In this document: in pieces, positions 10,935-38,472 of the stretch | How positions within the stretch are numbered: the first letter of the stretch is position 1 | Layout: every line of letters starts with the position of its first letter | Source: Rebecca billardiae RCC1528 | Taxonomy: Eukaryota; Protista; Haptophyta | Direction: 5' to 3' | Length of the DNA: 64,000 bases | NCBI GenBank assembly: GCA_965240325.2 | Contig: OZ251250.1 | Location: 248,001 to 312,000 of the forward strand | The notes under the pieces: generated by a model | What the model saw: the letters and a program-made list of their open reading frames with translations, nothing else | Database searches by the model: none | Told to the model about the DNA's origin: nothing | Program-made: the position numbers and the translations under genes

Positions 10935-12350
10935 ATGGTCGACCCGACGTACCGCACGTGTGATCACACCGGCTGCAACGGCCTGCCTTCGTTCGGCATG
11001 CCTGGCGACGCGCGTCCCAGCCGGTGCTGGGAGCACAAGCTCGCCGGCATGGTCAACGTGAAGTGCCCCAAGTGCCAGCACGCGGGCTGCACCAAGTCGA
11101 AAGCGTGGGGCATGCCGGGCGACGCGCGCGCCAGCTTTTGCGCAGTGCACAAGCTGGCCGGCATGGTCGACATGAAGCACCTCAAGTACGTGTCGAGCCG
11201 CAAGTGTGATCACGCGGGCTGCACCACTGCGCCTTCGTTCGGCATGCCGGGTGACGCGCGCGCCAGCCGGTGCTGGGAGCACAAGCTGGCCGGCATGGTC
11301 GACGTGAAGTGCCCCAAGTGCCAGCACGCGGGCTGCACCAAGTCGAAAGCGTGGGGCATGCCGGGCGACGCGCGCGCCAGCTTTTGCGCAGTGCACAAGC
11401 TGGCCGGCATGGTCGACATGAAGCACCTCAAGTACGTGTCGAGCCGCAAGTGTGATCACGCGGGCTGCACCACTGCGCCTTCGTTCGGCATGCCGGGTGA
11501 CGCGCGCGCCAGCCGGTGCTGGGAGCACAAGCTGGCCGGCATGGTCGACCTGAAGAACCGCAAGTGCGATCACACGGGCTGCACCACGCAGCCTTTCTTT
11601 GGCATGCCTGGCGACGCGCGCGCCAGCCGGTGCGCTGCGCACAAGCTGGCCGGCATGGTCAACGTGTCGAACCGCAAGTGTGATCACACGGGCTGCACCA
11701 CTAAGCCTTCGCTCGGCATGCCGGGCGACGCGCGCGCCAGCCGGTGCGCTGCGCACAAGCTGGCCGGCATGGTCAACGTGTCGAACCGCAAGTGTGATCA
11801 CACGGGCTGCACCACTAAGCCTTCGCTCGGCATGCCGGGCGACGCGCGCGCCAGCCGGTGCGCTGCGCACAAGCTGGCCGGCATGGTCAACGTGTCGAAC
11901 CGCAAGTGTGATCACACGGGCTGCACCACGGTGCCTTCATTTGGCATGCCGGGCGACGCGCGCGCAGGCCGGTGCGCTGCGCACAAGCTGGCCGGCATGG
12001 TCGACCTGAAGCACCCCAAGTGTGATCACACCGGCTGCACCACGGTGCCTTCATTTGGCATGCCGGGCGACGCGCGCGCCAGCCGGTGCGCTGCGCACAA
12101 GCTGGCCGGCATGGTCAACGTGAATAGCCGCCTGCAAGGTAGTGCGCACAAGCGTGGGCTGGAGCAAGACACGAGCGCCGAAGAATCGAGCGCCGCCAAG
12201 CGACAGCGGAAGCACACCAGCAGCACAGCCACTGCTACTCGGGACGTTGCAGCGCGGCCGCGATCGCCGCAGCTCCCGCCGCTGGTCACAGCCAGCGTCG
12301 TATCGGCGCCGCCGCCGAACGTCCCTGTAATGATGGCCAGGCTGGCGTGA
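10935..12350 (+). CDS. EsV-1-7-type Cys/His repeat protein, copy 1 (10 repeats, 471 aa from first in-frame ATG)
   Basis: Tandem 114-bp units encoding MVDxxxRKCDHTGCTTxPSFGMPGDARASRCAAHKLAG (C-x4-C-x16-C-x2-H), matching the EsV-1-7 repeat as I recall it. Basic C-tail AAKRQRKH. The start is uncertain because a half repeat lies upstream of the ATG. Confidence 0.8.
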   Translation: MVDPTYRTCDHTGCNGLPSFGMPGDARPSRCWEHKLAGMVNVKCPKCQHAGCTKSKAWGMPGDARASFCAVHKLAGMVDMKHLKYVSSRKCDHAGCTTAPSFGMPGDARASRCWEHKLAGMVDVKCPKCQHAGCTKSKAWGMPGDARASFCAVHKLAGMVDMKHLKYVSSRKCDHAGCTTAPSFGMPGDARASRCWEHKLAGMVDLKNRKCDHTGCTTQPFFGMPGDARASRCAAHKLAGMVNVSNRKCDHTGCTTKPSLGMPGDARASRCAAHKLAGMVNVSNRKCDHTGCTTKPSLGMPGDARASRCAAHKLAGMVNVSNRKCDHTGCTTVPSFGMPGDARAGRCAAHKLAGMVDLKHPKCDHTGCTTVPSFGMPGDARASRCAAHKLAGMVNVNSRLQGSAHKRGLEQDTSAEESSAAKRQRKHTSSTATATRDVAARPRSPQLPPLVTASVVSAPPPNVPVMMARLA

Positions 12351-13896
12351 CCGGCGCCGCCGCAGACGGCAGAGTGGCCTGCTGCCGAGCTGCGCGAGCG
12401 GACCCTGCGCGAGTGCGCGACGACTGTCCCACTGCGCGCGCCAGCGGCCGACGTTTGTGGCACTTCTCACCCTCATCGACATCCGCCGGAGGCCGATGAT
12501 GATTGATGATGCCGTGATGCGGCCCGGTGCCGTGTGAGGCTAGTCTGGAGCGACTGCTAGTACTTACAACGGCGTCATCTGGATGCGCGCTGCTACTTTT
12601 TGTCGCTGCCAGATCTACTCGTCATTGATATGTCTGGCATGCCGCTCAGCTGGGCCAGCCAGAGGCCTGTTCATCAGCAGCCGGTGCCCGCGCCGGGACG
12701 GCGGCAGGGCGCCGCGCGGCGGTCGGCCTGTTGCAAATTGAATAAAATATGGGTTGGCGCTGCGCGTCAACTTGGGCTGGAAACCTGTTTCTGAAACGCA
12801 TGATGGCACGCCGGGCCGGTAGCCCGAGGCTCGGAATTCCGACGCTGCCACGGGCGCCACAGGGGCGCAGCGGCGGGGCTGACGACGCGCGCGCGTGTGC
12901 ACGTCTGACCACGGAGTGCGCGCTGAATGACCGGCCCGTCTGCAGCACCACGCCCCGCGCTGTGAGTGAGAGTGTGGCCCGCGCCCAAGCGAGAACGCGG
13001 GCTTACGGGGCGGCACTCCGCCGACCTCGCCGGCCGCCGACCAGCCCGCGGCCGCCTGCTGCAGCTCGTGGACCACGCAGTCGCGCGCTCGCGCGTGGAG
13101 GGCGGACCTGCGCGTATGCGCCCGCCGGGCTTGCCGCTTCATCCGCTGGCACCGCACGCGAGCCGCTCGTCGCGCGCAGTGCAGGTCGAGCCCTCCGCCG
13201 CCACCGAGCCGGCGCCACGCCTCGCGCTCGTGCTCGAGCTGAGGCGGCGCGTGTCGCCCGAGCCGGCGGGTTCGCGCGCGTGCGCGTGGTGGGCAGCCTC
13301 GCGCGTGCGCCCGCCGCGCGCCCCGCGTCGCTCGCTTGGCGCCGCACGCGAGCCGCTCGTCGCGCGACCGAACGAGACGTCAATCGCAAGGGCGACCGGC
13401 GACCCTTGGAATGGCGTGGGCTCGCTCGCCTGTCGTCCTTCACGGGACGTCGTCGATGCGAGGCCGCGCGGTTGCTCCGATGCTCGTAGTCCAATGCAAG
13501 ATGATACCCGCGTGCCAATATCAGCGCGCCCCTTTGCTCGTGAAATGTCTAGCGAGAAAGTGACGGTTCGTGCGAATGTGAAGTGTGAACTCGCGACACG
13601 ACGAATGGGCCGATGCGATTCGCGCGAATGTGAGTACGCAAAGCGCCGAACGACGAGCGGCTTTTGACCGAACGACGAGCGGCTTTTGTCCTATCGAGCG
13701 CCTAGGCGGGTACGCGAATTGCGCATATGTGACCGACAGACAGACAGACAGACGGGTTAGCCGGGGCGTCAAAAAAAGGCCTGCGACGGGCTGGTCCCCA
13801 GCGTGAAGTCGTGCCTTTGTTCTCGTGGGTTTCCAGAATAATACGCCAACAAATATGTGACGGCGACATCCCAGTGGGAATCCGCGTGACGCCCGG

Positions 13897-14037
13897 TTGG
13901 ATGCAGAGTGTTCTCGACGAGGATGGCGTCTGGACCGCGGGGAACGCGATCGCTGCACCCCTGAGGTTGTCGTGAGTGCAGCAATCCACTTGCGCCAGGC
14001 TGCGGCGTGACCTACGTCGAGAACACTCTGCATCCAA
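13897..14037. repeat. Perfect 23-bp inverted repeat pair enclosing 95 bp
   Basis: TTGGATGCAGAGTGTTCTCGACG (13897-13919) and CGTCGAGAACACTCTGCATCCAA (14015-14037). Confidence 0.9.
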
Positions 14038-14104
14038 GTGGGCACCCCCTCATGTCCAAGCGGAAGCAGAAGCTCTCCGCGCGCGGTCGACGCGGCAAGA
14101 AAGC

Positions 14105-15596: not shown

Positions 15597-16115
15597 TCAC
15601 CGAGCCGGTCGCTCCCACTGCGGACACGCGCCACTCGGCTGATCAACAATACAATCCCATTTATGACGATACATACATAGTGACCACGCCGAGAGGAACC
15701 GAGCGAGCGCCGCGCGGCCCGCGGGCCGCGCGAGCGGCACGGAGAGCGTGGCGGGCGCGCCGCACGCGCGGCTGGCCTCGTCGCGCCAGCGCACGGCGAG
15801 CTGGTCGGTGCGGTCGTCGAAGGAGGTGCGCAGCCGCGCGAGCGCCTCGCCCGCCGAGAACGCCGAGAAGAAGAACTCCTTGTGCACCCACCGCGGGTCG
15901 TCCGCGTCACAGGCCGCGCCGGGCTCGCGCGCGCGCGCGCCGCGCAGCAGCGCGTAGCGGCGGTCGGCGGGGAAGGCGTCGCCCTCGCCGAGCCGCACGC
16001 GCTCGAGCTCGTCGAACCACAGGCCCTTGCACGGGTAGCGGTGCAGCGCGCTCACGCGCGCCAGCGAGCCCGGCGAGGCCCACAGCAGCGCGCCGAGCGC
16101 CGCCGCGGCAGCCAT
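15597..16115 (-). pseudogene. Truncated MOSC duplicate (N-terminal part plus novel C-tail, 172 aa open)
   Basis: Nearly identical to 10314-10742, then switches to WSLCMYRHKWDCIVDQPSGACPQWERPAR*. It lacks the segment carrying the conserved MOSC Cys. Confidence 0.8.
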
Positions 16116-16292
16116 CGCGGACGGCGGCCGGAAGGGGTGCAGCCTTTGCCGTGCCCGTGCGGGCACTGGGCAGCCCTGCCTCCCCGTCCGCGCGGTTGCG
16201 GGAGGGTCAACCAGCCATCGCGCAAGGGGGCGCCGCGGCCCTTTTGGTTCGACGCGCGCGCCAGCCGGTGCTCTGCGCACACGCTGGCCGGA

Positions 16293-17594
16293 ATGGTCGA
16301 CCCGACGTACCGCACGTGTGATCACACCGGCTGCAACGGCCTGCCTTCGTTCGGCATGCCTGGCGACGCGCGCGCCAGCCGGTGCTGGGAGCACAAGCTC
16401 GCCGGCATGGTCAACGTGAAGTGCCCCAAGTGCCAGCACGCGGGCTGCACCAAGTCGAAAGCGTGGGGCATGCCGGGCGACGCGCGCGCCAGCTTTTGCG
16501 CAGTGCACAAGCTGGCCGGCATGGTCGACATGAAGCACCTCAAGTACGTGTCGAGCCGCAAGTGTGATCACGCGGGCTGCACCACTGCGCCTTCGTTCGG
16601 CATGCCGGGTGACGCGCGCGCCAGCCGGTGCTGGGAGCACAAGCTGGCCGGCATGGTCGACGTGAAGTGCCCCAAGTGCCAGCACGCGGGCTGCACCAAG
16701 TCGAAGGCGTGGGGCATGCCGGGCGACGCGCGCGCCAGCTTTTGCACAGTGCACAAGCTGGCCGGCATGGTCGACATGAAGCACCTCAAGTACGTGTCGA
16801 GCCGCAAGTGTGATCACGCGGGCTGCACCACTGTGCCTTCGCTCGGCATGCCGGGCGACGCGCGCGCCAGCCGGTGCGCCACGCACAAGCTGGCCGGCAT
16901 GGTCGACGTGGTGAACCGCAAGTGCGATCGCACGGGCTGCACCACGGTGCCTTCATTTGGCATGCCGGGCGACGCGCGCGCCAGCCGGTGCGCTGCGCAC
17001 AAGCTGGCCGGCATGGTCAACGTGTCGAACCGCAAGTGTGATCACACGGGCTGCACCACGCGGCCTTCGCTCGGCATGCCGGGCGACGCGCGCGCCAGCC
17101 GGTGCGCTGCGCACAAGCTGGCCGGCATGGTCGACCTGCAGCACCGCAAGTGTGATCACACGGGCTGCACCAAGGGGCCTTCATTCGGCATGCCGGGCGA
17201 CGCGCGCGCCAGCCGGTGCGCTGCGCACAAGCTCGCCGGCATGGTCGACCTGAAGAACCGCAAGTGTGATCACACGGGCTGCACCACGGTGCCTTCATTC
17301 GGCATGCCGGGCGACGCGCGTGCCAGCCGGTGCGCTGCGCACAAGCTGGCCGGCATGGTCAACGTGAATAGCCGCCTGCAAGGTAGTGCGCACAAGCGTG
17401 GGCTGGAGCAAGACACGAGCGCCGAAGAATCGAGCGCCGCCAAGCGACAGCGGAAGCACACCAGCAGCACAGCCACTGCTACTCGGGACGTTGCAGCGCG
17501 GCCGCGATCGCCGCAGCTCCCGCCGCTGGTCACAGCCAGCGTCGTATCGGCGCCGCCGCCGAACGTCCCTGTAATGATGGCCAGGCTGGCGTGA
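16293..17594 (+). CDS. EsV-1-7-type repeat protein, copy 2 (9 repeats, 433 aa)
   Basis: Same scaffold and C-tail as copy 1, exactly one 38-aa unit shorter, with different variable residues. Confidence 0.8.
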   Translation: MVDPTYRTCDHTGCNGLPSFGMPGDARASRCWEHKLAGMVNVKCPKCQHAGCTKSKAWGMPGDARASFCAVHKLAGMVDMKHLKYVSSRKCDHAGCTTAPSFGMPGDARASRCWEHKLAGMVDVKCPKCQHAGCTKSKAWGMPGDARASFCTVHKLAGMVDMKHLKYVSSRKCDHAGCTTVPSLGMPGDARASRCATHKLAGMVDVVNRKCDRTGCTTVPSFGMPGDARASRCAAHKLAGMVNVSNRKCDHTGCTTRPSLGMPGDARASRCAAHKLAGMVDLQHRKCDHTGCTKGPSFGMPGDARASRCAAHKLAGMVDLKNRKCDHTGCTTVPSFGMPGDARASRCAAHKLAGMVNVNSRLQGSAHKRGLEQDTSAEESSAAKRQRKHTSSTATATRDVAARPRSPQLPPLVTASVVSAPPPNVPVMMARLA

Positions 17595-18043
17595 CCGGCG
17601 CCGCCGCAGACGGCAGAGTGGCCTGCTGCCGAGCTGCGCGAGCGGACCCTGCGCGAGTGCGCGACGACTGTCCCACTGCGCGCGCCAGCGGCCGACGTTT
17701 GTGGCACTTCTCACCCTCATCGACATCCGCCGGAGGCCGATGATGATGCCGTGATGCGGCCCGGTGCGGCCGGTGCCGTGTGACTGTGAGGCTAGTCTCG
17801 ACTGCTAGTACTTGTAACAACGGCGTCTGGATGCGCGCTGCTACTTATTGTCGCTGCCAGATCTACTCGTCATTGATATGTCTGGCATGCCGGTCAGCTG
17901 GGCCAGCCAGAGGCCTGTTCATCAGCAGCGGTGCCCGCGCCGGGACGGCGGCAGGGCGCCGCGCGGCGGTCTCAGAGTGATGACTGATGAGTCTCAGGGC
18001 GCGGTCAGACTCCGGGACCGCACAGTGAGTGCCTCAACGAGGA

Positions 18044-18562
18044 TCACCGAGCCGGTCGCTCCCACTGCGGACACGCGCCACTCGGCTGATCAACAATACA
18101 ATCCCATTTATGATGATACATACATAGTGACCACGCCGAGAGGAACCGAGCGAGCGCCGCGCGGCCCGCCGGCCGCGCGAGCGGCACGGAGAGCGTGGCG
18201 GGCGCGCCGCACGCGCGGCTGGCCTCGTCGCGCCAGCGCACGGCGAGCTGGTCGGTGCGGTCGTCGAAGGAGGTGCGCAGCCGCGCGAGCGCCTCGCCCG
18301 CCGAGAACGCCGAGAAGAAGAACTCCTTGTGCACCCACCGCGGGTCGTCCGCGTCAAAGCCCGCGCCGGGCTCGCGCGCGCGCGCGCCGCGCAGCAGCGC
18401 GTAGCGGCGGTCGGCGGGGAAGGCGTCGCCCTCGCCGAGCCGCACGCGCTCGAGCTCGTCGAACCACAGGCCCTTGCACGGGTAGCGGTGCAGCGCGCTC
18501 ACGCGCGCCAGCGAGCCCGGCGAGGCCCACAGCAGCGCGCCGAGCGCCGCCGCGGCAGCCAT
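18044..18562 (-). pseudogene. Truncated MOSC duplicate (172 aa open)
   Basis: Same junction and length (519 bp) as 15597-16115. Confidence 0.8.
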
Positions 18563-18674
18563 CGCGGACGGCGGCCGGGAGGGGTGCAGCCCTTGGCGTG
18601 CCCGTGCGGGCACTGGCCGCCGCTGCCCTGCGGCGCTGACGGCGGGAGGTACGCTGCGCGAAGCTGCCGCGCGG

Positions 18675-19349
18675 ATGAGCGCCCAACCTGACGAGGGTCA
18701 GGCGAGCGCCACGCTGCCATCTCTGCCCCAGATCGACCTCCTCCTCGAAGACGGCGACCCTGAACATTGGGACGCTGAGCTCGTCATCTCGGCCGGGGAC
18801 CTCGACGTGTACACGCTCGCGCTCACGTCGGACAACGAGGCCAAACTGCCGAGCGCGTGGCAAGCGCAGGCGCATTACCGCCTGCTCTTTGCCATCTTCG
18901 TCCCGCGCTGGTTCACGCACGGCTTCTCCAGCCCCGCGTGCTTTGTGGACGGCCGGCTCCTGAAAGGCGTGCACATCGACGCCGCTGAACTGACGGCGCC
19001 GACTCACTACCTCCTGCTCAGCGTGCGGCACGAAGCTCAGCGTGCGGCGCGGCATGCGTCCGGTCGCCCGTGGCTGTCGCAGGTGCCATGGATGACCGCC
19101 GACGTTGTGCTCACCGTCGTGCAGCACCTGCTCGCGCACGGCCAGATGGTCGGCCAAGCTGCGCCTGCGCTGCGCGCCGAGCGCGCCCGGAGCTCGCCGC
19201 GATCGCCGCAGCCTTCTAAGGCATGGGCGCGAGCTTCCCGGCCAAGGCGCATGAGCTCGAGCAGCGCGCGCAGGCGCACGCAGCCGCCGCCTCGCCTGGC
19301 CGGCGGCGGCGGCACGTCGGTTGGGCACGCATGTCGTCCGAACCTGTAG
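18675..19349 (+). CDS. Hypothetical protein present only in copy 3 of the unit
   Basis: ATG-initiated 224-aa ORF. The first ~160 aa look globular with host-like codons (IDLLLEDGDPEHWDAELVISAGDLDVYTL...). No family recognised; the tail may be frameshifted. Confidence 0.5.
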   Translation: MSAQPDEGQASATLPSLPQIDLLLEDGDPEHWDAELVISAGDLDVYTLALTSDNEAKLPSAWQAQAHYRLLFAIFVPRWFTHGFSSPACFVDGRLLKGVHIDAAELTAPTHYLLLSVRHEAQRAARHASGRPWLSQVPWMTADVVLTVVQHLLAHGQMVGQAAPALRAERARSSPRSPQPSKAWARASRPRRMSSSSARRRTQPPPRLAGGGGTSVGHACRPNL

Positions 19350-20015
19350 CAAGGCTTGCAGCCAGTCGATCCTCACGCACGTCGGCACGAAGTGTACGCT
19401 CGCCGAAGCTGCAGGCCACGTCGAGCCTCGCGCACAAGCGCCCGTCCCGTCGCCGTCGCCGTCGACGACTGCCGCCATCAGCTCCTGGTCTGCGGCCGCA
19501 GCCTAGCTGACTCCGGTCCGGTCGTCAACCCACGGGCCCGGCCGCGGCGGCACGGCGGTGGCGGCCGCGGCGCACCGACCTGCGCCTCAGCTCAGGCTAC
19601 CGCACGCACGCTCGTGATCGACGCCGCCTACTATATGATCGTAGCAGCAGCATATCTATAGGCCGTAATCTGCCCATCTCGACGCGCCGACTTGACCGTA
19701 AGTGGGCGCGCAGCACGCGACCCTACGCGGATGGCAGCTGTCGAGCTGAGTTGCGACTGACTGCACGACCCTCAGTAGATCGCCCAGCGCCGGCGACTCG
19801 CCGCGCGCACAGGCGAGCGCGCTTGCAGCAGTTGCCCATGTATGTGCCCCGACGTGCCAAGCTCGAGAGCGCCTCGAAACTCGCCCTGGATGGGCCACGC
19901 GCGCAGCCTCGAGAGCGCGCGGCCGCAGACTGGGCCGGGCCGGGCGGAATGCAGCAGGCCTGCGCGGCGGAGCGAGGCGACAGTGCGGGGCGAGAAGGGG
20001 CGGGGATGATCCTCC

Positions 20016-21440
20016 ATGTCTCCTGGGGCCATCCGCCCAGCGCGCGCGGGCGTGCGCGCCGCGAGGGCCGCGCATCAGCCTGCGCAGCGCGCGTGGTGCG
20101 GGTCAGATTGGTCGCCATCGCCCGATCCTGAGGGTTTGCTCCCCAAGCCGTGCGGTTGCGGGAGGGTCAACCAGCCATCGCGCAAGGGGGCGCCGCGGCC
20201 CTTTTGGTTCGACGCGCGCGCCAGCCGGTGCTCTGCGCACACGCTGGCCGGAATGGTCGAGCCAAAGTACCGCACGTGTGATCACACCGGCTGCAACGGC
20301 CTGCCTTCGTTCGGCATGCCTGGCGACGCGCGTCCCAGCCGGTGCTGGGAGCACAAGCTCGCCGGCATGGTCAACGTGAAGTGCCCCAAGTGCCAGCACG
20401 CGGGCTGCACCAAGTCGAAAGCGTGGGGCATGCCGGGCGACGCGCGCGCCAGCTTTTGCGCAGTGCACAAGCTGGCCGGCATGGTCGACATGAAGCACCT
20501 CAAGTACGTGTCGAGCCGCAAGTGTGATCACGCGGGCTGCACCACTGCGCCTTCGTTCGGCATGCCGGGTGACGCGCGCGCCAGCCGGTGCTGGGAGCAC
20601 AAGCTGGCCGGCATGGTCGACGTGAAGTGCCCCAAGTGCCAGCACGCGGGCTGCACCAAGTCGAAAGCGTGGGGCATGCCGGGCGACGCGCGCGCCAGCT
20701 TTTGCGCAGTGCACAAGCTGGCCGGCATGGTCGACATGAAGCACCTCAAGTACGTGTCGAGCCGCAAGTGTGATCACGCGGGCTGCACCACTGCGCCTTC
20801 GTTCGGCATGCCGGGTGACGCGCGCGCCAGCCGGTGCTGGGAGCACAAGCTGGCCGGCATGGTCGACCTGAAGAACCGCAAGTGCGATCACACGGGCTGC
20901 ACCACGCAGCCTTTCTTTGGCATGCCGGGCGACGCGCGCGCCAGCCGGTGCGCTGCGCACAAGCTCGCCGGCATGGTCGACCTGAAGAACCGCAAGTGTG
21001 ATCACACGGGCTGCACCAAGGGGCCTTCATTCGGCATGCCGGGCGACGCGCGCGCCAGCCGGTGCGCTACGCACAAGCTCGCCGGCATGGTCGACCTGAA
21101 GAACCGCAAGTGTGATCACACGGGCTGCACCACGATGCCTTCATTCGGCATGCCGGGCGACGCGCGTGCCAGCCGGTGCGCTGCGCACAAGCTGGCCGGC
21201 ATGGTCAACGTGAATAGCCGCCTGCAAGGTAGTGCGCACAAGCGTGGGCTGGAGCAAGACACGAGCGCCGAAGAATCGAGCGCCGCCAAGCGACAGCGGA
21301 AGCACACCAGCAGCACAACCACTGCTACTCCGGACGTTGCAGCGCGGCCGCGATCGCCGCAGCTCCCGCCGCTGGTCACAGCCAGCGTCGTATCGGCGCC
21401 GCCGCCGAACGTACCTGTAATGATGGCCAGGCTGGCGTGA
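20016..21440 (+). CDS. EsV-1-7-type repeat protein, copy 3 (8 repeats plus half repeat; 474 aa from ATG 20016, or 395 aa from 20253)
   Basis: The only copy with a true in-frame ATG upstream of the half repeat. Confidence 0.8.
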   Translation: MSPGAIRPARAGVRAARAAHQPAQRAWCGSDWSPSPDPEGLLPKPCGCGRVNQPSRKGAPRPFWFDARASRCSAHTLAGMVEPKYRTCDHTGCNGLPSFGMPGDARPSRCWEHKLAGMVNVKCPKCQHAGCTKSKAWGMPGDARASFCAVHKLAGMVDMKHLKYVSSRKCDHAGCTTAPSFGMPGDARASRCWEHKLAGMVDVKCPKCQHAGCTKSKAWGMPGDARASFCAVHKLAGMVDMKHLKYVSSRKCDHAGCTTAPSFGMPGDARASRCWEHKLAGMVDLKNRKCDHTGCTTQPFFGMPGDARASRCAAHKLAGMVDLKNRKCDHTGCTKGPSFGMPGDARASRCATHKLAGMVDLKNRKCDHTGCTTMPSFGMPGDARASRCAAHKLAGMVNVNSRLQGSAHKRGLEQDTSAEESSAAKRQRKHTSSTTTATPDVAARPRSPQLPPLVTASVVSAPPPNVPVMMARLA

Positions 21441-23567: not shown

Positions 23568-23570
23568 CTA

Positions 23571-26873: not shown

Positions 26874-27392
26874 TCACCGAGCCGGCCGCTCCCACTGCGG
26901 ACACGCGCCACTCGGCTGATCAACAATACAATCCCATTTATGATGATACATACATAGTGACCACGCCGAGAGGAACCGAGCGAGCGCCGCGCTGCCCGCC
27001 GGCCGCGCGAGCGGCACGGAGACCGTGGCGGGCGCGCCGCACGCGCGGCTGGCCTCGTCGCGCCAGCGCACGGCGAGCTGGTCGGTGGGGTCGTCGAAAG
27101 AGGTGCGCAGCCAAGCGAGCGCCTCGCCCGCCGAGAACGCCGAGAAGAAGAACTCCTTGTGCACCCACCGCGGGTCGTCCGCGTCAAAGGCCGCGCCGGG
27201 CTCGCGCGCGCGCGCGCCGCGCAGCAGCGCGTAGCGGCGGTCGGCGGGGAAGGCGTCGCCCTCGCCGAGCCGCACGCGCTCGAGCTCGTCGAACCACAGG
27301 CCCTTGCACGGGTAGCGGTGCAGCGCGCTCACGCGCGCCAGCGAGCCCGGCGAGGCCCACAGCAGCGCGCCGAGCGCCGCCGCGGCAGCCAT
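26874..27392 (-). pseudogene. Truncated MOSC duplicate (172 aa open)
   Basis: 519-bp ORF with several substitutions relative to the full gene (e.g. ALAWLR, DDPTD). Confidence 0.8.
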
Positions 27393-27569
27393 CGCGGACG
27401 GCGGCCGGAAGGGGTGCAGCCTTTGGCGTGCCCGTGCGGGCACTGGGCAGCCCTGCCTCCCCGTCCGCGCGGTTGCGGGAGGGTCAACCAGCCATCGCGC
27501 AAGGGGGCGCCGCGGCCCTTTTGGTTCGACGCGCGTGCCAGCCGGTGCTCTGCGCACACGCTGGCCGGC

Positions 27570-28379: not shown

Positions 28380-28565
28380 CCGGCGCCGCCGCAGACGGCA
28401 GAGTGGCCTGCTGCGCGACGGCGGACCCGCGGCCGCGACGACTGCGCGCAGGGGGGCCGACGACGTTTCGGTTTGCGGCACCCTTCCCCTCCCGGTCGCG
28501 GAGGCGGATGGACGGGTCACGGGGTGCCGCGTGTAACTATAACTCTGGACTAGTGGAGCAGACTA

Positions 28566-28980
28566 TCGTCCGGTGGATTTGCATTTGGCACACCTGGCTC
28601 TCCCAGAACACCTTCTTGGCCGCCGCGACCGAGCGCAAGTAGATACGGCGCTCAAACTTGTTCGTGCTTCGATCTTCTAAGCTCACCTAGGAACGCGGCA
28701 AAACAATCCCGAGCTTGCTACGGTCTGTAGTTCGTGAGATATGACCTCCGCCATTTCACAGCCGAAACCACTGCGGGAAACAGGGCCCAAAAATGACAAG
28801 GCACCACGTTTTCGGCCATAACTACGACCGAACGGGAGCAGATATCGAGACGCGGTTTGTTTCCCCGCGAGCTCTAAGCTCAGCTTAGGTCTCGCTCGAC
28901 CACCGCGAACCGCGTTGCCGAGGTTACATGGGCAGCGGCAGCGCGGACAAAAAGGTGCCAAATGCAAATCCACCGGACGA
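28566..28980. mobile_element. MITE, second copy
   Basis: Same 26-bp TIRs and TA flanks. Confidence 0.85.
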
Positions 28981-29059
28981 TAGTTCCGTGCGGACGACCG
29001 TTAAATTGTTATTAATAGAACGAATCATAATATATATCTTATTACTGAACGGCGTCTGG

Positions 29060-31631
29060 GACAGGTTGCACGGAGAAATGACCGCCCGCGACTGACAGAT
29101 GTTACATTCACAGTGGACGCGACCTGTCCACCCGTCTTTCGGTACATCGCGCCCTGGCCGATACACACCTTTACCGCTCTGCGCATGGGGAACCCATGCT
29201 CGCAGAGCGGCCGGGGCGAATCTCAGGGGCCTGAGGCGGTCCCGGACGCGCGCCCCGCGGCCACACCTGAGGGTGCGGGCGGGCTCTTCGATCATGTTGG
29301 TGAGCTCTCCGCCATCGGGGCGCGCTTCATTGCGCCGCCTCGCCTCGCGTACGGCGTTCCCGTCGTGCTCGCACTGACAAGGCTTCACAAGGCTGAGCAG
29401 AGCGTAGAGTGCCATCATGATTGCATTCGGTTCCAACTTGCTCGCCAGCCACTTCCAGCCAGGTGCGCGCGGCTTGGGAGTAGACGATTAGTTCCGTGTG
29501 CCCGGGCTCGTCGTGACACCGGCATGCCGATCCCTCCCCAGCCGAGATGTCAGAGCGCGTGCGCACAGGCAGTCACAGGCAGTGCGCACTGGTAGCCAAG
29601 TGGACGCGTGTGAGCGACGACAAGCCACGACGAGAAAACGGCCGCATCCAACCTTCTCACATACCACTAGACCACCGCGCAGAATGCGTCTGAGCCCGCC
29701 CATTCCCGCCCATAACGAGTTACAGCGGCTCGATTGTGAGGCGGGTGCAAAGGCGGCGGGTGAAAGCGAGCCCCGCGCGGGCGGCGAGAGAGACGCGCGT
29801 GCATAGACCTGATGCGGGAGTGCCCGAACAACGTGAAGGTGCGTCCATCTTCCAAGCGCGCGACCGGTCCGACACCGCGCCACGCCAAACGAGCACCACG
29901 CGTGTCGCCCCCCAGCGCCGGCCACGCGTCCCGAGGCGCTGCCATGTTTCGTCACGGGCCCGATCTCTGAGGTTAGCACCGGCCGCTCTGCGAGCGTGGT
30001 TCCACCACGCGCAGAGCGGCCGGGTGTGTATCGGCCAGCATCGCGCCCGTCCCATGGCGGCCGGCGCGTGGCGCGAGTGCTTGGAAACCACGGAGCACAC
30101 GAATGCCGGTGGTTTCCGACCTTCGCCGCCACGGCCCGCCTCCCCGTTCGCCCGCAATCGGTACCGCAGTCTGGTGCCCAGTTCCTCTCACTCCCGCGTC
30201 GGCAGTGGCGCGAAGCCGAAGCGCATCGGGAAGAAGCACAACTGGGACCTGGATACAGGCGGTAGATAGAGCCTTCAAGGAGGCTGCTGTCGCGAACGAG
30301 CAGGATGCGCCGGTTGCGGTATGCGCGTGCACCTTTGCACGAACGTGTGCTGGTCTCCTGCTGCACTGCTCGTGCCGTACGCACGAGCGCGCAACCGTGC
30401 GCACGCGCTCAGGTGGCTCGGACCACACACGCGAGTGCTTGTGAAGCTCGCCTCACGAGGCCTTCGTAGAAGAAGGCGGGCAACCGTAGTGCGCTAAGGA
30501 AGCAGAAGGAGATGCTCGCCAAACGCGTGCAGCGCGCGTGGGCGAAGCTTGCTACGGCGCGCGCGGCCTCTGCTGTTGCAGCTCGGGCCGCCGCTCCGGC
30601 CGTGCAGGCGTCTGGCGCGGGGTCCTCGGACAAGCAGGCGAACTCTGGGCAGTCTGCCTTTGCCGCCGGCAAGAAGTATAGGAAGCGCACGCATTTGGTC
30701 GTGCGCGTGGCGCGCTCGCGCGCCGTGACGCAGCAAGCAGGCGATCCTTGACAAGCGACTCGCTGACGCTCAGCAGGCCGAGGCGACGAGCGCGGCGCTC
30801 GACCACGCTGACAGGCACGCCCTGAGTGAGGGTGAAGGCACCTTTCGAGACAGCACTCAGGCGCTCGACGTTGGGTATGCCATTGATCGCGCGCGTGTGT
30901 GATCACGGCAGCAAGACTAAGTCGCGCGAGGTGGAGTAGGTGGTAGCGCGCCTCTTCGCCGCATCATCCGCAGCTGACTGGCGTGCGCTAGCTCGCTCAC
31001 GTCGCGCGCGGCAGCGGTCTGCTTCCACCCTGTGCGCACAGCGCGGCGCCGGCTGCACCGCCCGTTCCACTGGACGCCGGCTCGCTCGTCGTTGACGACT
31101 TCTTCTTCAACCCGGTCGCGCGGGCGCGGTGATGGCACACTCCGGCAGGCAGATGCGGCGCACTGCTCTATGCGTGCGTCGGTGCCTTTCCACGACGTCG
31201 ACTCAGGCTGCTACGCGTGGCATCCAGCTCGAGGCGGAGGTCGCCAGGGCTCGCCCAAGGTCGAGTCTGCCTTGCGTGTGCTAGGTCGCCGAGGTGCGGC
31301 CGCAGAGTGCTCGCTGGCTGAATCCTGACGATGACGAGGAGTTGCGCGCCGTCGCAACCTCTCGCACGTAGTATCGTGCCGACCGAGTCGAGTCGGATGA
31401 CGCTCGTGGCGGCTGCTCTTCAAATGACGCGGTCGGGCCCTTGGCGAGCTTGGGAGGAGGGCTCGGTCTGCTACATGTGCGTCAGTAGTCACGGCCTAAA
31501 CCGTGCGCAAGACTCATTGAGTCGTACATGGCGCGGCAGCACGGCCGCACCCGCGAGGGCACCGTGGGCGGGCAGCCATGCTCCAAAGGGCCGAAATGTA
31601 ACACCAAGGTCAGTTTCCCGTGCAACCTGTC
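29060..31631. mobile_element. 2.56-kb TIR element, second copy
   Basis: Same TIRs and CTGG TSD; carries a 10-bp insertion near 29385. Confidence 0.85.
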
Positions 31632-31868
31632 CTGGCGGATGATATGCGCTACTACTTGTCGCTGCATGCCAAAACTCGTAGTACGTAGTCAGTGACGATA
31701 TGTCTGGCCTGCCGGTCAGCTGGGCCAGCCAGAGGCCGCTGATGTTCATCAGAGGTGCGGCCCGCGCCGGGCCCGGGACGGCGCGCGCGCCGGCGCCGGG
31801 CGACGCCCCCGGCGGGCCGGGGGCACGCGGTCCGGGACTGCACACGGTGAGTGCCTCAGTGACGAGGA

Positions 31869-32387
31869 TCACCGAGCCGGCCGCTCCCACTGCGGACACG
31901 CGCCACTCGGCTGATCAACAATACAATCCCATTTATGATGATACATACATAGTGACCACGCCGAGAGGAACCGAGCGAGCGCCGCGCTGCCCGCCGGCCG
32001 CGCGAGCGGCACGGAGACCGTGGCGGGCGCGCCGCACGCGCGGCTGGCCTCGTCGCGCCAGCGCACGGCGAGCTGGTCGGTGGGGTCGTCGAAAGAGGTG
32101 CGCAGCCAAGCGAGCGCCTCGCCCGCCGAGAACGCCGAGAAGAAGAACTCCTTGTGCACCCACCGCGGGTCGTCCGCGTCAAAGGCCGCGCCGGGCTCGC
32201 GCGCGCGCGCGCCGCGCAGCAGCGCGTAGCGGCGGTCGGCGGGGAAGGCGTCGCCCTCGCCGAGCCGCACGCGCTCGAGCTCGTCGAACCACAGGCCCTT
32301 GCACGGGTAGCGGTGCAGCGCGCTCACGCGCGCCAGCGAGCCCGGCGAGGCCCACAGCAGCGCGCCGAGCGCCGCCGCGGCAGCCAT
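31869..32387 (-). pseudogene. Truncated MOSC duplicate (172 aa open)
   Basis: Same as 26874-27392. Confidence 0.8.
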
Positions 32388-32564
32388 CGCGGACGGCGGC
32401 CGGAAGGGGTGCAGCCTTTGGCGTGCCCGTGCGGGCACTGGGCAGCCCTGCCTCCCCGTCCGCGCGGTTGCGGGAGGGTCAACCAGCCATCGCGCAAGGG
32501 GGCGCCGCGGCCCTTTTGGTTCGACGCGCGTGCCAGCCGGTGCTCTGCGCACACGCTGGCCGGC

Positions 32565-33374
32565 ATGGTCAACATGTCGAACCGCAAGTGTGATCACACG
32601 GGCTGCACCACGCGGCCTTCGCTCGGCATGCCGGGCGACGCGCGCGCCAGCCGGTGCGCTGCGCACAAGCTGGCCGGCATGGTCGACGTGGTGACCCGCA
32701 AGTGTGATCACACGGGCTGCACCACTGTGCCTTCGCTCGGCATGCCGGGCGACGCGCGCGCCAGCCGGTGCGCTGCGCACAAGCTGGCCGGCATGGTCGA
32801 CGTGGTGACCCGCAAGTGCGATCACACGGGCTGCACCACGCAGCCTTCGCTCGGCATGCCGGGCGACGCGCGCGCCAGCCGGTGCGCTGCGCACAAGCTG
32901 GCCGGCATGGTCGACCTGAAGAACCGCAAGTGTGATCACACGGGCTGCACCAAGGGGCCTTCATTCGGCATGCCGGGCGACGCGCGCGCCAGCCGGTGCG
33001 CTACGCACAAGCTCGCCGGCATGGTCGACCTGAAGAACCGCAAGTGTGATCACACGGGCTGCACCACGATGCCTTCATTCGGCATGCCGGGCGACGCGCG
33101 TGCCAGCCGGTGCGCTGCGCACAAGCTGGCCGGCATGGTCAACGTGAATAGCCGCCTGCAAGGTAGTGCGCACAAGCGTGGGCTGGAGCAAGACACGAGC
33201 GCCGAAGAATCGAGCGCCGCCAAGCGACAGCGGAAGCACACCAGCAGCACAACCACTGCTACTCCGGACGTTGCAGCGCGGCCGCGATCGCCGCAGCTCC
33301 CGCCGCTGGTCACAGCCAGCGTCGTATCGGCGCCGCCGCCGAACGTACCTGTAATGATGGCCAGGCTGGCGTGA
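32565..33374 (+). CDS. EsV-1-7-type repeat protein, copy 5 (5 repeats, 269 aa)
   Basis: Protein identical to copy 4. Confidence 0.8.
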   Translation: MVNMSNRKCDHTGCTTRPSLGMPGDARASRCAAHKLAGMVDVVTRKCDHTGCTTVPSLGMPGDARASRCAAHKLAGMVDVVTRKCDHTGCTTQPSLGMPGDARASRCAAHKLAGMVDLKNRKCDHTGCTKGPSFGMPGDARASRCATHKLAGMVDLKNRKCDHTGCTTMPSFGMPGDARASRCAAHKLAGMVNVNSRLQGSAHKRGLEQDTSAEESSAAKRQRKHTSSTTTATPDVAARPRSPQLPPLVTASVVSAPPPNVPVMMARLA

Positions 33375-33560
33375 CCGGCGCCGCCGCAGACGGCAGAGTG
33401 GCCTGCTGCGCGAGCGCGGACCCGCGGCCGCGACGACTGCGCGCAGGGGGGCCGACGACGTTTCGGTTTGCGGCACCCTTCCCCTCCCGGTCGCGGAGGC
33501 GGATGGACGGGTCACGGGGTGCCGCGTGTAACTATAACTCTGGACTAGTGGAGCAGACTA

Positions 33561-33974
33561 TCGTCCGGTGGATTTGCATTTCAGGCACACCTGGCTCTCC
33601 CAGAACACCTTCTTGGCCGCCGCGACCGAGCGCAAGTAGATACGGCGCTCAAACTTGTTCGTGCTTCGATCTTCTAAGCTCACCTAGGAACGCGGCAAAA
33701 CAATCCCGAGCTTGCTACGGTCTGTAGTTCGTGAGATATGACCTCCGCCATTTCACAGTGAAACCACTGGGAAACAGGGCCCAAAAATGACAAGGCACCA
33801 CGTTTTCGGCCATAACTACGACCGAACGGGAGCAGATATCGAGACGCGGTTTGTTTCCCCGCGAGCTCTAAGCTCAGCTTAGGTCTCGCTCGACCACCGC
33901 GAACCGCGTTGCCGAGGTTACATGGGCAGCGGCAGCGCGGACAAAAAGGTGCCAAATGCAAATCCACCGGACGA
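33561..33974. mobile_element. MITE, third copy
   Basis: Same ends; the left TIR has a 2-bp insertion. Confidence 0.85.
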
Positions 33975-34053
33975 TAGTTCCGTGCGGACGACCGTTAAAT
34001 TGTTATTAATAGAACGAATCATAATATATATCTTATTACTGAACGGCGTCTGG

Positions 34054-36615
34054 GACAGGTTGCACGGAGAAATGACCGCCCGCGACTGACAGATGTTACA
34101 TTCACAGTGGACGCGACCTGTCCACCCGTCTTTCGGTACATCGCGCCCTGGCCGATACACACCTTTACCGCTCTGCGCATGGGGAACCCATGCTCGCAGA
34201 GCGGCCGGGGCGAATCTCAGGGGCCTGAGGCGGTCCCGGACGCGCGCCCCGCGGCCACACCTGAGGGTGCGGGCGGGCTCTTCGATCATGTTGGTGAGCT
34301 CTCCGCCATCGGGGCGCGCTTCATTGCGCCGCCTCGCCTCGCGTACGGCGTTCCCGTCGTGCTCGCACTGACAAGGCTGAGCAGAGCGTAGAGTGCCATC
34401 ATGATTGCATTCGGTTCCAACTTGCTCGCCAGCCACTTCCAGCCAGGTGCGCGCGGCTTGGGAGTAGACGATTAGTTCCGTGTGCCCGGGCTCGTCGTGA
34501 CACCGGCATGCCGATCCCTCCCCAGCCGAGATGTCAGAGCGCGTGCGCACAGGCAGTCACAGGCAGTGCGCACTGGTAGCCAAGTGGACGCGTGTGAGCG
34601 ACGACAAGCCACGACGAGAAAACGGCCGCATCCAACCTTCTCACATACCACTAGACCACCGCGCAGAATGCGTCTGAGCCCGCCCATTCCCGCCCATAAC
34701 GAGTTACAGCGGCTCGATTGTGAGGCGGGTGCAAAGGCGGCGGGTGAAAGCGAGCCCCGCGCGGGCGGCGAGAGAGACGCGCGTGCATAGACCTGATGCG
34801 GGAGTGCCCGAACAACGTGAAGGTGCGTCCATCTTCCAAGCGCGCGACCGGTCCGACACCGCGCCACGCCAAACGAGCACCACGCGTGTCGCCCCCCAGC
34901 GCCGGCCACGCGTCCCGAGGCGCTGCCATGTTTCGTCACGGGCCCGATCTCTGAGGTTAGCACCGGCCGCTCTGCGAGCGTGGTTCCACCACGCGCAGAG
35001 CGGCCGGGTGTGTATCGGCCAGCATCGCGCCCGTCCCATGGCGGCCGGCGCGTGGCGCGAGTGCTTGGAAACCACGGAGCACACGAATGCCGGTGGTTTC
35101 CGACCTTCGCCGCCACGGCCCGCCTCCCCGTTCGCCCGCAATCGGTACCGCAGTCTGGTGCCCAGTTCCTCTCACTCCCGCGTCGGCAGTGGCGCGAAGC
35201 CGAAGCGCATCGGGAAGAAGCACAACTGGGACCTGGATACAGGCGGTAGATAGAGCCTTCAAGGAGGCTGCTGTCGCGAACGAGCAGGATGCGCCGGTTG
35301 CGGTATGCGCGTGCACCTTTGCACGAACGTGTGCTGGTCTCCTGCTGCACTGCTCGTGCCGTACGCACGAGCGCGCAACCGTGCGCACGCGCTCAGGTGG
35401 CTCGGACCACACACGCGAGTGCTTGTGAAGCTCGCCTCACGAGGCCTTCGTAGAAGAAGGCGGGCAACCGTAGTGCGCTAAGGAAGCAGAAGGAGATGCT
35501 CGCCAAACGCGTGCAGCGCGCGTGGGCGAAGCTTGCTACGGCGCGCGCGGCCTCTGCTGTTGCAGCTCGGGCCGCCGCTCCGGCCGTGCAGGCGTCTGGC
35601 GCGGGGTCCTCGGACAAGCAGGCGAACTCTGGGCAGTCTGCCTTTGCCGCCGGCAAGAAGTATAGGAAGCGCACGCATTTGGTCGTGCGCGTGGCGCGCT
35701 CGCGCGCCGTGACGCAGCAAGCAGGCGATCCTTGACAAGCGACTCGCTGACGCTCAGCAGGCCGAGGCGACGAGCGCGGCGCTCGACCACGCTGACAGGC
35801 ACGCCCTGAGTGAGGGTGAAGGCACCTTTCGAGACAGCACTCAGGCGCTCGACGTTGGGTATGCCATTGATCGCGCGCGTGTGTGATCACGGCAGCAAGA
35901 CTAAGTCGCGCGAGGTGGAGTAGGTGGTAGCGCGCCTCTTCGCCGCATCATCCGCAGCTGACTGGCGTGCGCTAGCTCGCTCACGTCGCGCGCGGCAGCG
36001 GTCTGCTTCCACCCTGTGCGCACAGCGCGGCGCCGGCTGCACCGCCCGTTCCACTGGACGCCGGCTCGCTCGTCGTTGACGACTTCTTCTTCAACCCGGT
36101 CGCGCGGGCGCGGTGATGGCACACTCCGGCAGGCAGATGCGGCGCACTGCTCTATGCGTGCGTCGGTGCCTTTCCACGACGTCGACTCAGGCTGCTACGC
36201 GTGGCATCCAGCTCGAGGCGGAGGTCGCCAGGGCTCGCCCAAGGTCGAGTCTGCCTTGCGTGTGCTAGGTCGCCGAGGTGCGGCCGCAGAGTGCTCGCTG
36301 GCTGAATCCTGACGATGACGAGGAGTTGCGCGCCGTCGCAACCTCTCGCACGTAGTATCGTGCCGACCGAGTCGAGTCGGATGACGCTCGTGGCGGCTGC
36401 TCTTCAAATGACGCGGTCGGGCCCTTGGCGAGCTTGGGAGGAGGGCTCGGTCTGCTACATGTGCGTCAGTAGTCACGGCCTAAACCGTGCGCAAGACTCA
36501 TTGAGTCGTACATGGCGCGGCAGCACGGCCGCACCCGCGAGGGCACCGTGGGCGGGCAGCCATGCTCCAAAGGGCCGAAATGTAACACCAAGGTCAGTTT
36601 CCCGTGCAACCTGTC
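34054..36615. mobile_element. 2.56-kb TIR element, third copy
   Basis: Same TIRs and CTGG TSD. Confidence 0.85.
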
Positions 36616-36852
36616 CTGGCGGATGATATGCGCTACTACTTGTCGCTGCATGCCAAAACTCGTAGTACGTAGTCAGTGACGATATGTCTGGCCTGCCGGT
36701 CAGCTGGGCCAGCCAGAGGCCGCTGATGTTCATCAGAGGTGCGGCCCGCGCCGGGCCCGGGACGGCGCGCGCGCCGGCGCCGGGCGACGCCCCCGGCGGG
36801 CCGGGGGCACGCGGTCCGGGACTGCACACGGTGAGTGCCTCAGTGACGAGGA

Positions 36853-37371
36853 TCACCGAGCCGGCCGCTCCCACTGCGGACACGCGCCACTCGGCTGATC
36901 AACAATACAATCCCATTTATGATGATACATACATAGTGACCACGCCGAGAGGAACCGAGCGAGCGCCGCGCTGCCCGCCGGCCGCGCGAGCGGCACGGAG
37001 ACCGTGGCGGGCGCGCCGCACGCGCGGCTGGCCTCGTCGCGCCAGCGCACGGCGAGCTGGTCGGTGGGGTCGTCGAAAGAGGTGCGCAGCCAAGCGAGCG
37101 CCTCGCCCGCCGAGAACGCCGAGAAGAAGAACTCCTTGTGCACCCACCGCGGGTCGTCCGCGTCAAAGGCCGCGCCGGGCTCGCGCGCGCGCGCGCCGCG
37201 CAGCAGCGCGTAGCGGCGGTCGGCGGGGAAGGCGTCGCCCTCGCCGAGCCGCACGCGCTCGAGCTCGTCGAACCACAGGCCCTTGCACGGGTAGCGGTGC
37301 AGCGCGCTCACGCGCGCCAGCGAGCCCGGCGAGGCCCACAGCAGCGCGCCGAGCGCCGCCGCGGCAGCCAT
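36853..37371 (-). pseudogene. Truncated MOSC duplicate (172 aa open)
   Basis: Same as 26874-27392. Confidence 0.8.
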
Positions 37372-37548
37372 CGCGGACGGCGGCCGGAAGGGGTGCAGCC
37401 TTTGGCGTGCCCGTGCGGGCACTGGGCAGCCCTGCCTCCCCGTCCGCGCGGTTGCGGGAGGGTCAACCAGCCATCGCGCAAGGGGGCGCCGCGGCCCTTT
37501 TGGTTCGACGCGCGTGCCAGCCGGTGCTCTGCGCACACGCTGGCCGGC

Positions 37549-38472
37549 ATGGTCAACATGTCGAACCGCAAGTGTGATCACACGGGCTGCACCACGCGGC
37601 CTTCGCTCGGCATGCCGGGCGACGCGCGCGCCAGCCGGTGCGCTGCGCACAAGCTGGCCGGCATGGTCGACGTGGTGACCCGCAAGTGTGATCACACGGG
37701 CTGCACCACTGTGCCTTCGCTCGGCATGCCGGGCGACGCGCGCGCCAGCCGGTGCGCTGCGCACAAGCTGGCCGGCATGGTCGACGTGGTGACCCGCAAG
37801 TGCGATCACACGGGCTGCACCACGCAGCCTTCGCTCGGCATGCCGGGCGACGCGCGCGCCAGCCGGTGCGCTGCGCACAAGCTGGCCGGCATGGTCGACG
37901 TGGTGACCCGCAAGTGCGATCACACGGGCTGCACCATGCGGCCTTCGCTCGGCATGCCTGGCGACGCGCGCGCCAGCCGGTGCGCTGCGCACAAGCTCGC
38001 CGGCATGGTCGACCTGCAGCACCGCAAGTGTGATCACACGGGCTGCACCATGCGGCCTTCGCTCGGCATGCCTGGCGACGCGCGCGCCAGCCGGTGCGCT
38101 GCGCACAAGCTCGCCGGCATGGTCGACCTGCAGCACCGCAAGTGTGATCACACGGGCTGCACCACTGTGCCTTCGCTCATCATGCCGGGCGACGCGCGCG
38201 CCAGCCGGTGCGCTGCGCACAAGCTGGCCGGCATGGTCGACGTGAATAGCCGCCTGCAAGGTAGTGAGCACAAGCGTGGGCTGGAGCAAGACACGAGCGC
38301 CGAAGAATCGAGCGCTGCCAAGCGACAGCGGAAGCACACCAGCAGCACAGCCACTGCTACTCGGGACGTTGCAGCGCGGCCGCGATCGCCGCAGCTCCCG
38401 CCGCTGGTCACAGCCAGCGTCGTATCGGCGCCGCCGCCGAACGTCCCTGTAATGATGGCCAGGCTGGCGTGA
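37549..38472 (+). CDS. EsV-1-7-type repeat protein, copy 6 (6 repeats, 307 aa)
   Basis: First three repeats as in copies 4/5, then TMR, TMR and TTV units; C-tail of the copy 1/2 type. Confidence 0.8.
   Translation: MVNMSNRKCDHTGCTTRPSLGMPGDARASRCAAHKLAGMVDVVTRKCDHTGCTTVPSLGMPGDARASRCAAHKLAGMVDVVTRKCDHTGCTTQPSLGMPGDARASRCAAHKLAGMVDVVTRKCDHTGCTMRPSLGMPGDARASRCAAHKLAGMVDLQHRKCDHTGCTMRPSLGMPGDARASRCAAHKLAGMVDLQHRKCDHTGCTTVPSLIMPGDARASRCAAHKLAGMVDVNSRLQGSEHKRGLEQDTSAEESSAAKRQRKHTSSTATATRDVAARPRSPQLPPLVTASVVSAPPPNVPVMMARLA

Follow-up and report, generated by a model that had tools for sequence, protein, structure and literature searches.

What does a cluster of genes read, if it reads anything, when the proteins it encodes are strings of nearly identical repeats that differ from one another chiefly at a single residue? 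The question is raised by a stretch of 64,000 nucleotides from the haptophyte Rebecca billardiae RCC1528 (assembly GCA_965240325.2, contig OZ251250.1, positions 248,001 to 312,000, forward strand), which we call the window and in which all coordinates are counted unless another locus is named. Between 10.9 and 38.5 kb, it carries six plus-strand open reading frames (ORFs) with 43 repeats of the EsV-1-7 type, in which a first-pass annotation had seen a candidate recognition code with one hypervariable codon per repeat. Two observations carry our argument: the residues at positions 9 and 11 of the repeat escape, family-wide, the homogenisation undergone by the rest of the array, and the commonest fusion partner of such arrays is a domain predicted to have a nuclease fold. 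We lean, with some reserve, towards reading the cluster as a modular, recombining, DNA-reading zinc-repeat system of the EsV-1-7 family.

The Six Arrays and Their Repeats

ORF listing and motif parsing gave the following picture. Gene 1 (10935–12350) has ten repeats, whose residues at the variable position spell LSASAQKKVV; gene 2 (16293–17594) has nine (LSASVVRGV); gene 3 (20253–21440) has eight (LSASAQGM); gene 4 (27570–28379) and gene 5 (32565–33374), which are near-identical, have five each (RVQGM in both); and gene 6 (37549–38472) has six (RVQRRV). The six frames are intact, with 269–471 codons, and all of them end in a common 75-residue tail, basic and proline-rich, which contains a KRQRK motif resembling a nuclear localization signal (NLS); the tail of gene 2 is that of gene 1. 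On all these descriptive points (the number of repeats and genes, the near-invariant scaffold, the strings, which were exact, the intact frames, and the tail in six of six genes), the first-pass annotation was borne out.

Pfam was run on three of the six genes (1, 3, and 6), and EsV_1_7_cys (PF19114, curated gathering score of 25 bits) was the sole domain above threshold, with scores of 430.6, 343, and 277.6 bits over 10, 8, and 6 stretches, respectively (E 2.9e-132, 6.9e-105, and 2e-84). Genes 2, 4, and 5 carry repeats of the same type, as judged by motif parsing. The EsV-1-7 identity proposed at first pass is thus settled by the hidden Markov model (HMM) scores, and the best match to the window arrays in a library of representatives is 60% identical.

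Residues C1, C6, C23, and H26 are kept in all 43 repeats (C-x4-C-x16-C-x2-H), a C3H set of ligands through which each repeat would bind zinc. Of the repeats, 37 have a period of 38 aa and six one of 44 aa; 38 aa is also the modal period among 120 homologues. The segment HKLAGMV is invariant across repeats, and GMPGDARAS is invariant save for one G-to-I, two A-to-P, and one S-to-G replacements. This uniformity extends to the DNA: codons 13–32 are almost identical, synonymous sites included, and Tandem Repeats Finder (TRF) describes the coding sequence as 114-bp arrays with 91–94% matches. The net charge of the arrays is +2.5 to +3.1 per 38 residues.

Codon 9 within the Window

Against this scaffold, codon 9 (the third residue after GC) stands out. 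It takes nine amino acids encoded by nine codons, every one of the form NNG, as the first reading of the sequence had it. Its entropy is 3.05 bits, versus 1.62 at the next-ranking position, and its nucleotide diversity is 0.70, 0.75, and 0.00 at bases 1, 2, and 3; third positions overall have a mean of 0.133 and a maximum of 0.53, below the first two bases of codon 9, so that variation at this codon lies above the synonymous level, as had been anticipated.

As genes 4 and 5 are near-identical, the independent sample amounts to 5 arrays, 26 distinct units, and 23 distinct 99-nt cores. Taking as the minimum number of changes the number of distinct states minus one over these cores, codon 9 requires at least eight non-synonymous and no synonymous changes, whereas codons have 1.3 changes on average (Poisson P 6.5e-5; P 2e-3 once corrected for 33 codons). 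If only the most uniform type of repeat is considered, codon 9 still needs 5 changes, versus 0.76 (P 1e-3). A CpG mutational hotspot was considered and rejected, as most of the changes at codon 9 are not CpG transitions. One has to keep in mind that codon 9 is the most variable codon and not the only variable one: to speak of a single hypervariable codon was too narrow, since codons 8 and 25 (four states each), codons 11, 12, and 24 (three each), and the linker (33–37) vary as well.

Positions 9 and 11 across the Family

The same position can be followed well beyond the window. We used an HMM of the window repeats to align 676 repeats from the 120 homologues listed (the best being 36–58% identical), which come from viruses and metagenomes, Effrenium, Coccomyxa, and brown algae. 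Position 9 shows the highest within-protein pairwise difference of all positions (0.81). An array was called homogenised when it had at least four repeats with at least 60% identity, and the ratio of within-array to between-array difference, position by position, served as the control. In the 35 homogenised arrays of this first sample, the most different position was mostly 9 or 11 (17 and 18 times, respectively; any other at most 5), and the ratio was 0.92 at position 9 and 0.85 at position 11, versus 0.17–0.57 at the other variable positions, save position 33 (0.79). A second sample of 137 new representatives provided 36 further homogenised arrays, in which the ratio was 0.93 at position 9 and 0.79 at position 11; over both samples, the other variable core positions lie at 0.14–0.65, position 33 again excepted (about 0.8). 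Position 9, at which the window shows a selection-like excess of non-synonymous change, escapes homogenisation in about 70 independent arrays elsewhere. For positions 9 and 11, an artefact of the alignment was considered and rejected, as ungapped 38-mers give the same result; in these, linker positions 33, 35, and 36 behave likewise.

The two positions flank a conserved proline. In the 36-aa repeats of the dinoflagellate Effrenium voratum, it is the same pre-proline residue that varies, with R, I, and Q in use. Over 805 repeats, position 9 is occupied by Q (25%), R (24%), and I (12%), and by D or E in 6 cases; the window arrays have a different mix from the family, made of V, S, R, A, Q, G, L, M, and K.

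An AlphaFold2 (AF2) model of four repeats, built on an alignment of 83 four-repeat segments, has a predicted local distance difference test score (pLDDT) of 90.9 and a predicted template modelling score (pTM) of 0.58. In each repeat of the model, short strands are found at 12–13, 22, and 32–33, a one-turn helix at 24–26 bears the C-x2-H pair, and residue 9 falls within an extended stretch that links the knuckle to the first strand. The alternation of the variable positions 9 and 11 with the conserved P10 and F/Y12 suggests that both variable residues may face outward, on a common side.

Nuclease-Fold Fusions and the Nature of the Ligand

If such residues contact a ligand, the partners of the arrays may tell which. 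A C-terminal domain of about 190 aa is found on 67 of the 120 homologues of the first sample and on 103 of the 137 of the second, hence on 170 of 257. It starts with CxxxxC...CxxC and has four invariant residues (D79, E92, E95, and H98) in an RPD...EVDExQH motif. By sequence, Pfam, PHROGs, and phmmer against the PDB gave no significant match, the best profile match being AF1548 (E 0.44). The AF2 model of the domain (pLDDT 86.4, pTM 0.81) was compared with known folds: nearly all of the best 50 Foldseek matches in the PDB are PD-(D/E)XK or related nucleases (E 1e-3 to 0.2, probability up to 0.97), including McrC, the R2 endonuclease, Hjc, Bax1, AF1548, restriction enzymes, and Cas4. The top VIA-align match is the catalytic domain of the homing endonuclease I-Bth0305I (Z 7.9, root mean square deviation (rmsd) 3.4 Å, 95 of 97 residues), with Vsr lower down (Z 6.3), and among the matches in BFVD (E down to 3.5e-21) are proteins of giant viruses that bear the name "Endonuclease", one DUF559 protein, and one "group I intron putative endonuclease". 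We, therefore, predict, from fold comparison only, a PD-(D/E)XK domain of the Vsr/homing-endonuclease type. The gene of one such protein, P0003 (L001:2090-4777), lies directly downstream of the gene for the small subunit of ribonucleotide reductase on a 15-kb metagenomic contig; such a placement is typical of free-standing homing endonucleases.

Both C2H2 fingers and the N-termini of transposases are modules that bind DNA. In other giant-virus proteins, the nuclease-fold domain stands behind C2H2 zinc fingers in place of the EsV-1-7 array (BFVD; an atlas search shows the same swaps); it also occurs behind WRKY19-type fingers. Moreover, a Tc1/mariner transposase of Ectocarpus has an N-terminal EsV-1-7 domain (PMC12477816). 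Because the array shares its architectures with modules of this kind, a DNA-binding role may be proposed for it, and of the three ligands left open by the first-pass annotation (DNA, RNA, or protein), DNA comes out, from this reasoning on domain architecture, as the most likely.

The arrays could nevertheless recognise protein or RNA in a modular way, much as binders of the leucine-rich repeat (LRR) or ankyrin type do, or zinc knuckles that bind RNA, the viral nuclease fusions then using the array otherwise than for target choice. Such a reading would sit well with an array model that is unlike any solved DNA-binding fold and that has weak echoes of treble clefs of the RING, LIM, and PHD types, many of which bind proteins; it would also account for the fusions of EsV-1-7 arrays to the non-DNA domains Tudor, zf-MIZ, ankyrin, rhomboid, ArfGap, and Rieske (P0002, P0064, P0093, P0112, and atlas clusters). 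However, the commonest partner by far is the nuclease-fold domain, found elsewhere on C2H2 fingers, the transposase fusion is published, the arrays are strongly basic, and Q and R prevail at position 9, which is nearly devoid of acidic residues; we consider protein or RNA as the main ligand to be unlikely, albeit the most serious competitor of a DNA-reading system.

Kept Differences or a Loose Loop

A DNA-reading array supposes that the variable residues matter. They might not: residue 9 and its neighbours could form an unconstrained loop, at which neutral variation stands out simply because concerted evolution acts around it, without any code. Position 9 is indeed variable in the family at large (entropy of 3.44 bits), the window offers only about eight events, the linker is variable too, and variable blocks between homogenised cores could merely mark the ends of conversion tracts. 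What speaks against a loose loop is the comparison with positions 2, 7, 14, and 25: over the whole family, their entropy is as high as that of position 9 or higher, and they are, nonetheless, homogenised within arrays (ratio of 0.4–0.5, versus 0.85–0.93 for positions 9 and 11) in two independent samples of arrays whose DNA is unrelated. Since positions 9 and 11 resist homogenisation while equally variable positions do not, we favour residues kept different within arrays over an unconstrained loop. In the window, moreover, the codon 9 changes are all non-synonymous, the third base being constant. In the virus-type array of P0003 (locus L001), the X-P-X codons differ at synonymous sites too, next to a homogenised scaffold, as expected for variants kept for a long time. 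The absence of any code seems to us, on the whole, improbable.

Tandem Units and the Reshuffling of Arrays

Genes 4, 5, and 6 lie in tandem units of about 4995 bp (23567–38124; unit A 23567–28561, unit B 28562–33556, and unit C from 33557), which are 99.2–99.3% identical. Units A and B differ at four indel sites and by one to three substitutions, their arrays (genes 4 and 5) by one base. Between units B and C, the spacer has no substitution in about 4 kb, and the arrays differ by the indel of one 114-bp unit plus more than 25 substitutions. Elsewhere in the cluster, whole units are shared as a mosaic among paralogues (a-b-c-b-d in genes 1 and 3, q-r in genes 3, 4, and 5, s-t in genes 4, 5, and 6), while the tails of the genes differ at 0–5 of 228 nt. 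Because of this mosaic and of the remodelled array of unit C beside a substitution-free spacer, it can be stated that the arrays are reshuffled between paralogues by unequal recombination and conversion, far faster than the flanks mutate; the recombining character ascribed to them at the outset is thereby demonstrated. The differences between spacers are indels, e.g., of 10 bp near 24381 and at 26849-26858. The three units of about 5 kb are either a very recent duplication or in need of confirmation by independent long reads.

Neighbouring Genes and Gene Starts

The duplicated DNA contains more than arrays. A full-length MOSC-domain gene (9801–10742, minus strand, 313 aa; Pfam) stands head to head with gene 1, the two ATGs being about 190 bp apart, and the nearest relative of its product, 44% identical, is from the haptophyte Pleurochrysis carterae. 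Truncated copies of 172 aa are found on the minus strand at 15597–16115, 18044–18562, 26874–27392, 31869–32387, and 36853–37371; these five 5' fragments are probably pseudogene fragments carried along with the duplicated units. One of them, together with the shared upstream region (17991–18627), has no array beside it: about 1.5 kb of unrelated sequence (about 18628–20147), containing an unannotated ORF of 224 aa (18675–19349), separates it from gene 3, whose upstream region is for this reason unlike that of the other genes. The surroundings of this 1.5-kb stretch showed neither terminal repeats nor a target-site duplication, and the ORFs of the 5-kb spacer and between the genes have no Pfam match. 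Gene 3 has a second possible in-frame ATG at 20016. The only sequencing run found (X1, of unknown kind) contains no more than short and divergent pieces of the repeats and the region downstream, and leaves the MOSC gene uncovered.

On both sides, the cluster is flanked by ordinary cellular genes, one with a thimet-oligopeptidase N-terminal domain (8792–9586, minus strand) and one with an ArfGap domain (ORF 39432–42323). The GC content is about 60–83% throughout the window, with blocks of 78–83% at 40001–44000, 46001–52000, 54001–58000, and 60001–62000; the ORF at 38734–41019 contains a long run of glycine codons. Given the cellular flank genes and the host-like composition, a giant-virus insert was considered and rejected.

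A six-frame HMM scan of the window found, in addition to the 43 repeats, six N-terminal half repeats (HMM positions 17–33) on the plus strand, at 10893–10943, 16251–16301, 20211–20261, 27528–27581, 32523–32576, and 37507–37560, and no further repeat. There is one per gene, at the 5' end, in frame upstream of the annotated ATG and overlapping it. In the window genes as in P0003, P0020, P0087, and P0120, the predicted start is the conserved Met of a G-M-V-N-V motif, with a truncated leading repeat, and the predicted starts in the family are at a Met 4–9 residues ahead of the first Cys. The window ORFs extend upstream through the half repeat without an ATG; the predicted starts are, therefore, provisional, and there may be an upstream exon.

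These features might suggest copies without function, that is, an array gene of viral origin multiplied by very recent segmental duplication, or in part by over-expansion in the assembly, unexpressed and decaying, whose repeats differ through minisatellite instability; the near-identity of units A and B, the MOSC fragments that travel with the units (one of which has lost its array gene), the unrelated 1.5 kb that cuts gene 3 from the shared upstream region, and the mere half repeat ahead of each ATG all go in that direction, but the frames and the zinc ligands are preserved throughout, the differences between repeats are in frame and focused on one codon instead of scattered, and both context and composition are cellular, so that we regard this explanation as the least probable of the three.

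Comparison with Known Systems

The repeat of the window is that of the EsV-1-7 proteins, namely IMMEDIATE UPRIGHT (IMM) of Ectocarpus, its expanded brown-algal family, and EsV-1-7 of Ectocarpus siliculosus virus 1, with the same 38-aa period. Like the window genes, the brown-algal ones are reported to be clustered in tandem and to have no other Pfam domain (10.1101/2024.02.19.579948, 10.64898/2026.04.27.720984). In contrast to the brown-algal family, the window belongs to an alga of about 70% GC, its MOSC protein is nearest to a haptophyte one, and its repeats are far more homogenised, at the DNA level included; unlike IMM of Ectocarpus, its genes lack an IMM-type N-terminal domain. Brown algae are reported to have hundreds of EsV-1-7 genes per genome, and the literature describes the function of the motif only as possibly a new zinc finger; the papers searched describe neither hypervariable positions nor nuclease fusions in the family.

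A further parallel is with the viral and metagenomic proteins that join an array to the PD-(D/E)XK domain (Vsr/DUF559/I-Bth0305I-like), such as P0003. They have the same repeat, up to 58–60% identical to that of the window, an array that begins about 4–9 residues past the first Met, and variation at positions 9 and 11. The window genes differ from them in having the 75-residue KRQRK tail instead of a nuclease, the viral nuclease being known by predicted fold only; tblastn of 67 such domains gave only chance matches in the window (E at best 0.09).

The arrays of PRDM9 and of the KRAB zinc-finger proteins (KRAB-ZNF) are minisatellite-like arrays of fingers with a concerted scaffold, rapid and mostly non-synonymous change at a few contact codons, and unequal recombination. 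The window arrays resemble them in each of these features that can be read from DNA: they are tandem, predicted zinc modules in minisatellite-like coding DNA, with a homogenised scaffold and a non-synonymous excess focused on few codons. The modules themselves are different, a C2H2 finger being a 28-aa beta-beta-alpha unit and the window module a 38-aa C3H one (x4/x16/x2), and neither a C2H2 signature nor a PR/SET or KRAB domain was found by Pfam in genes 1, 3, and 6; there is no detectable homology. Transcription activator-like effector (TALE) repeats are 33–35-aa helical hairpins without metal that form a superhelix and read one base per repeat through residues 12 and 13. The effectors of Xanthomonas and Ralstonia share with the window near-identical repeats of similar length that differ at one or two adjacent residues, by which specificity would be set; the window repeat is, unlike theirs, a predicted zinc module, mostly coil with short strands, its linker varies too, and genes 1, 3, and 6 have no Pfam match to the TAL effector profile. 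The comparison with PRDM9 and TALE made at first pass, thus, holds for the evolutionary logic and fails as to homology with either.

Proposed Mechanism

In the mechanism that we propose, the cluster would consist of young, tandemly duplicated host genes of the EsV-1-7 family, each 38-residue repeat being a small C3H zinc module in which a C-x4-C knuckle is followed by a short beta element and a C-x2-H pair opening a one-turn helix. The arrays would act as coding minisatellites: unequal crossing-over and gene conversion in the core codons 13–32 would homogenise the scaffold and shuffle whole units among paralogues. Lasting differences would be left in the linker and in the segment past the knuckle, at residue 9 above all and also at 8, 11, and 12, and these would be the specificity-determining contacts with the ligand, each array spelling its own target as C2H2/PRDM9 and TALE arrays do. 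As the window proteins have no nuclease domain, a charge of about +3 per repeat, and a tail with an NLS-like KRQRK, we infer that they may, once expressed, be nuclear, sequence-specific DNA binders, either regulators or binders of foreign or repeated DNA. Of the system first proposed (modular, recombining, sequence-specific, and under diversifying selection), the modular and recombining character and a selection-like excess at codon 9 hold; sequence-specific binding, a code of one residue per base, and the role against viruses or transposons considered at first pass are putative.

Several points weigh against a DNA-reading system and are best taken together. Within the window, the selection argument comes down to few events, obtained by a crude minimum-change count that ignores recombination, and outside codon 9 the ratio of non-synonymous to synonymous changes, also a crude count, is 22:13, which is not strongly purifying. 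Nor can intact frames be taken as a sign of constraint in copies as recent as these six, in which the tails diverge by 2.2% at most and units A and B are all but identical. No transcript evidence was found for the loci, no RNA run being listed, which also favours copies without function, and the window proteins are absent from a collection of 5.8 billion proteins, where the best match is 58% identical. No solved structure resembles the four-repeat model (best Foldseek E 0.98; VIA Z no higher than 3.0), and in AFDB this model retrieves family members only, with superpositions of 7–10 Å rmsd, because of which a fixed geometry between repeats, or a regular superhelix tracking DNA, is not established. 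Finally, the nuclease assignment comes from predicted models with middling scores (E at best 1e-3, Z below 8) and no Pfam or PDB sequence match, and the fusion to a nuclease seen in viral relatives is no proof of DNA binding by host arrays that lack the nuclease.

What the Cluster May Mean for the EsV-1-7 Family

The EsV-1-7 family is large, with 6006 cluster representatives found, and includes the developmental regulator IMM. A wider proposal, which we put forward tentatively and with less conviction than the reading of the cluster itself, is that EsV-1-7 might be an unrecognised natural system of modular DNA recognition, in which the proline-flanking and linker residues would set specificity; viruses would use it to aim Vsr-like homing endonucleases, and hosts would have domesticated it as nuclease-free nuclear binders, possibly of the same targets (viral or repeated DNA). 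A position that resists homogenisation in arrays of unrelated lineages, the frequent endonuclease-fold fusions, and the interchange with C2H2 fingers provide, for what has been a "cysteine-rich motif of unknown function", a hypothesis that can be tested. A simple residue-to-base code, if there is one, would account for the diversification of the family in algae and their giant viruses and would add a new scaffold to the few programmable DNA binders.

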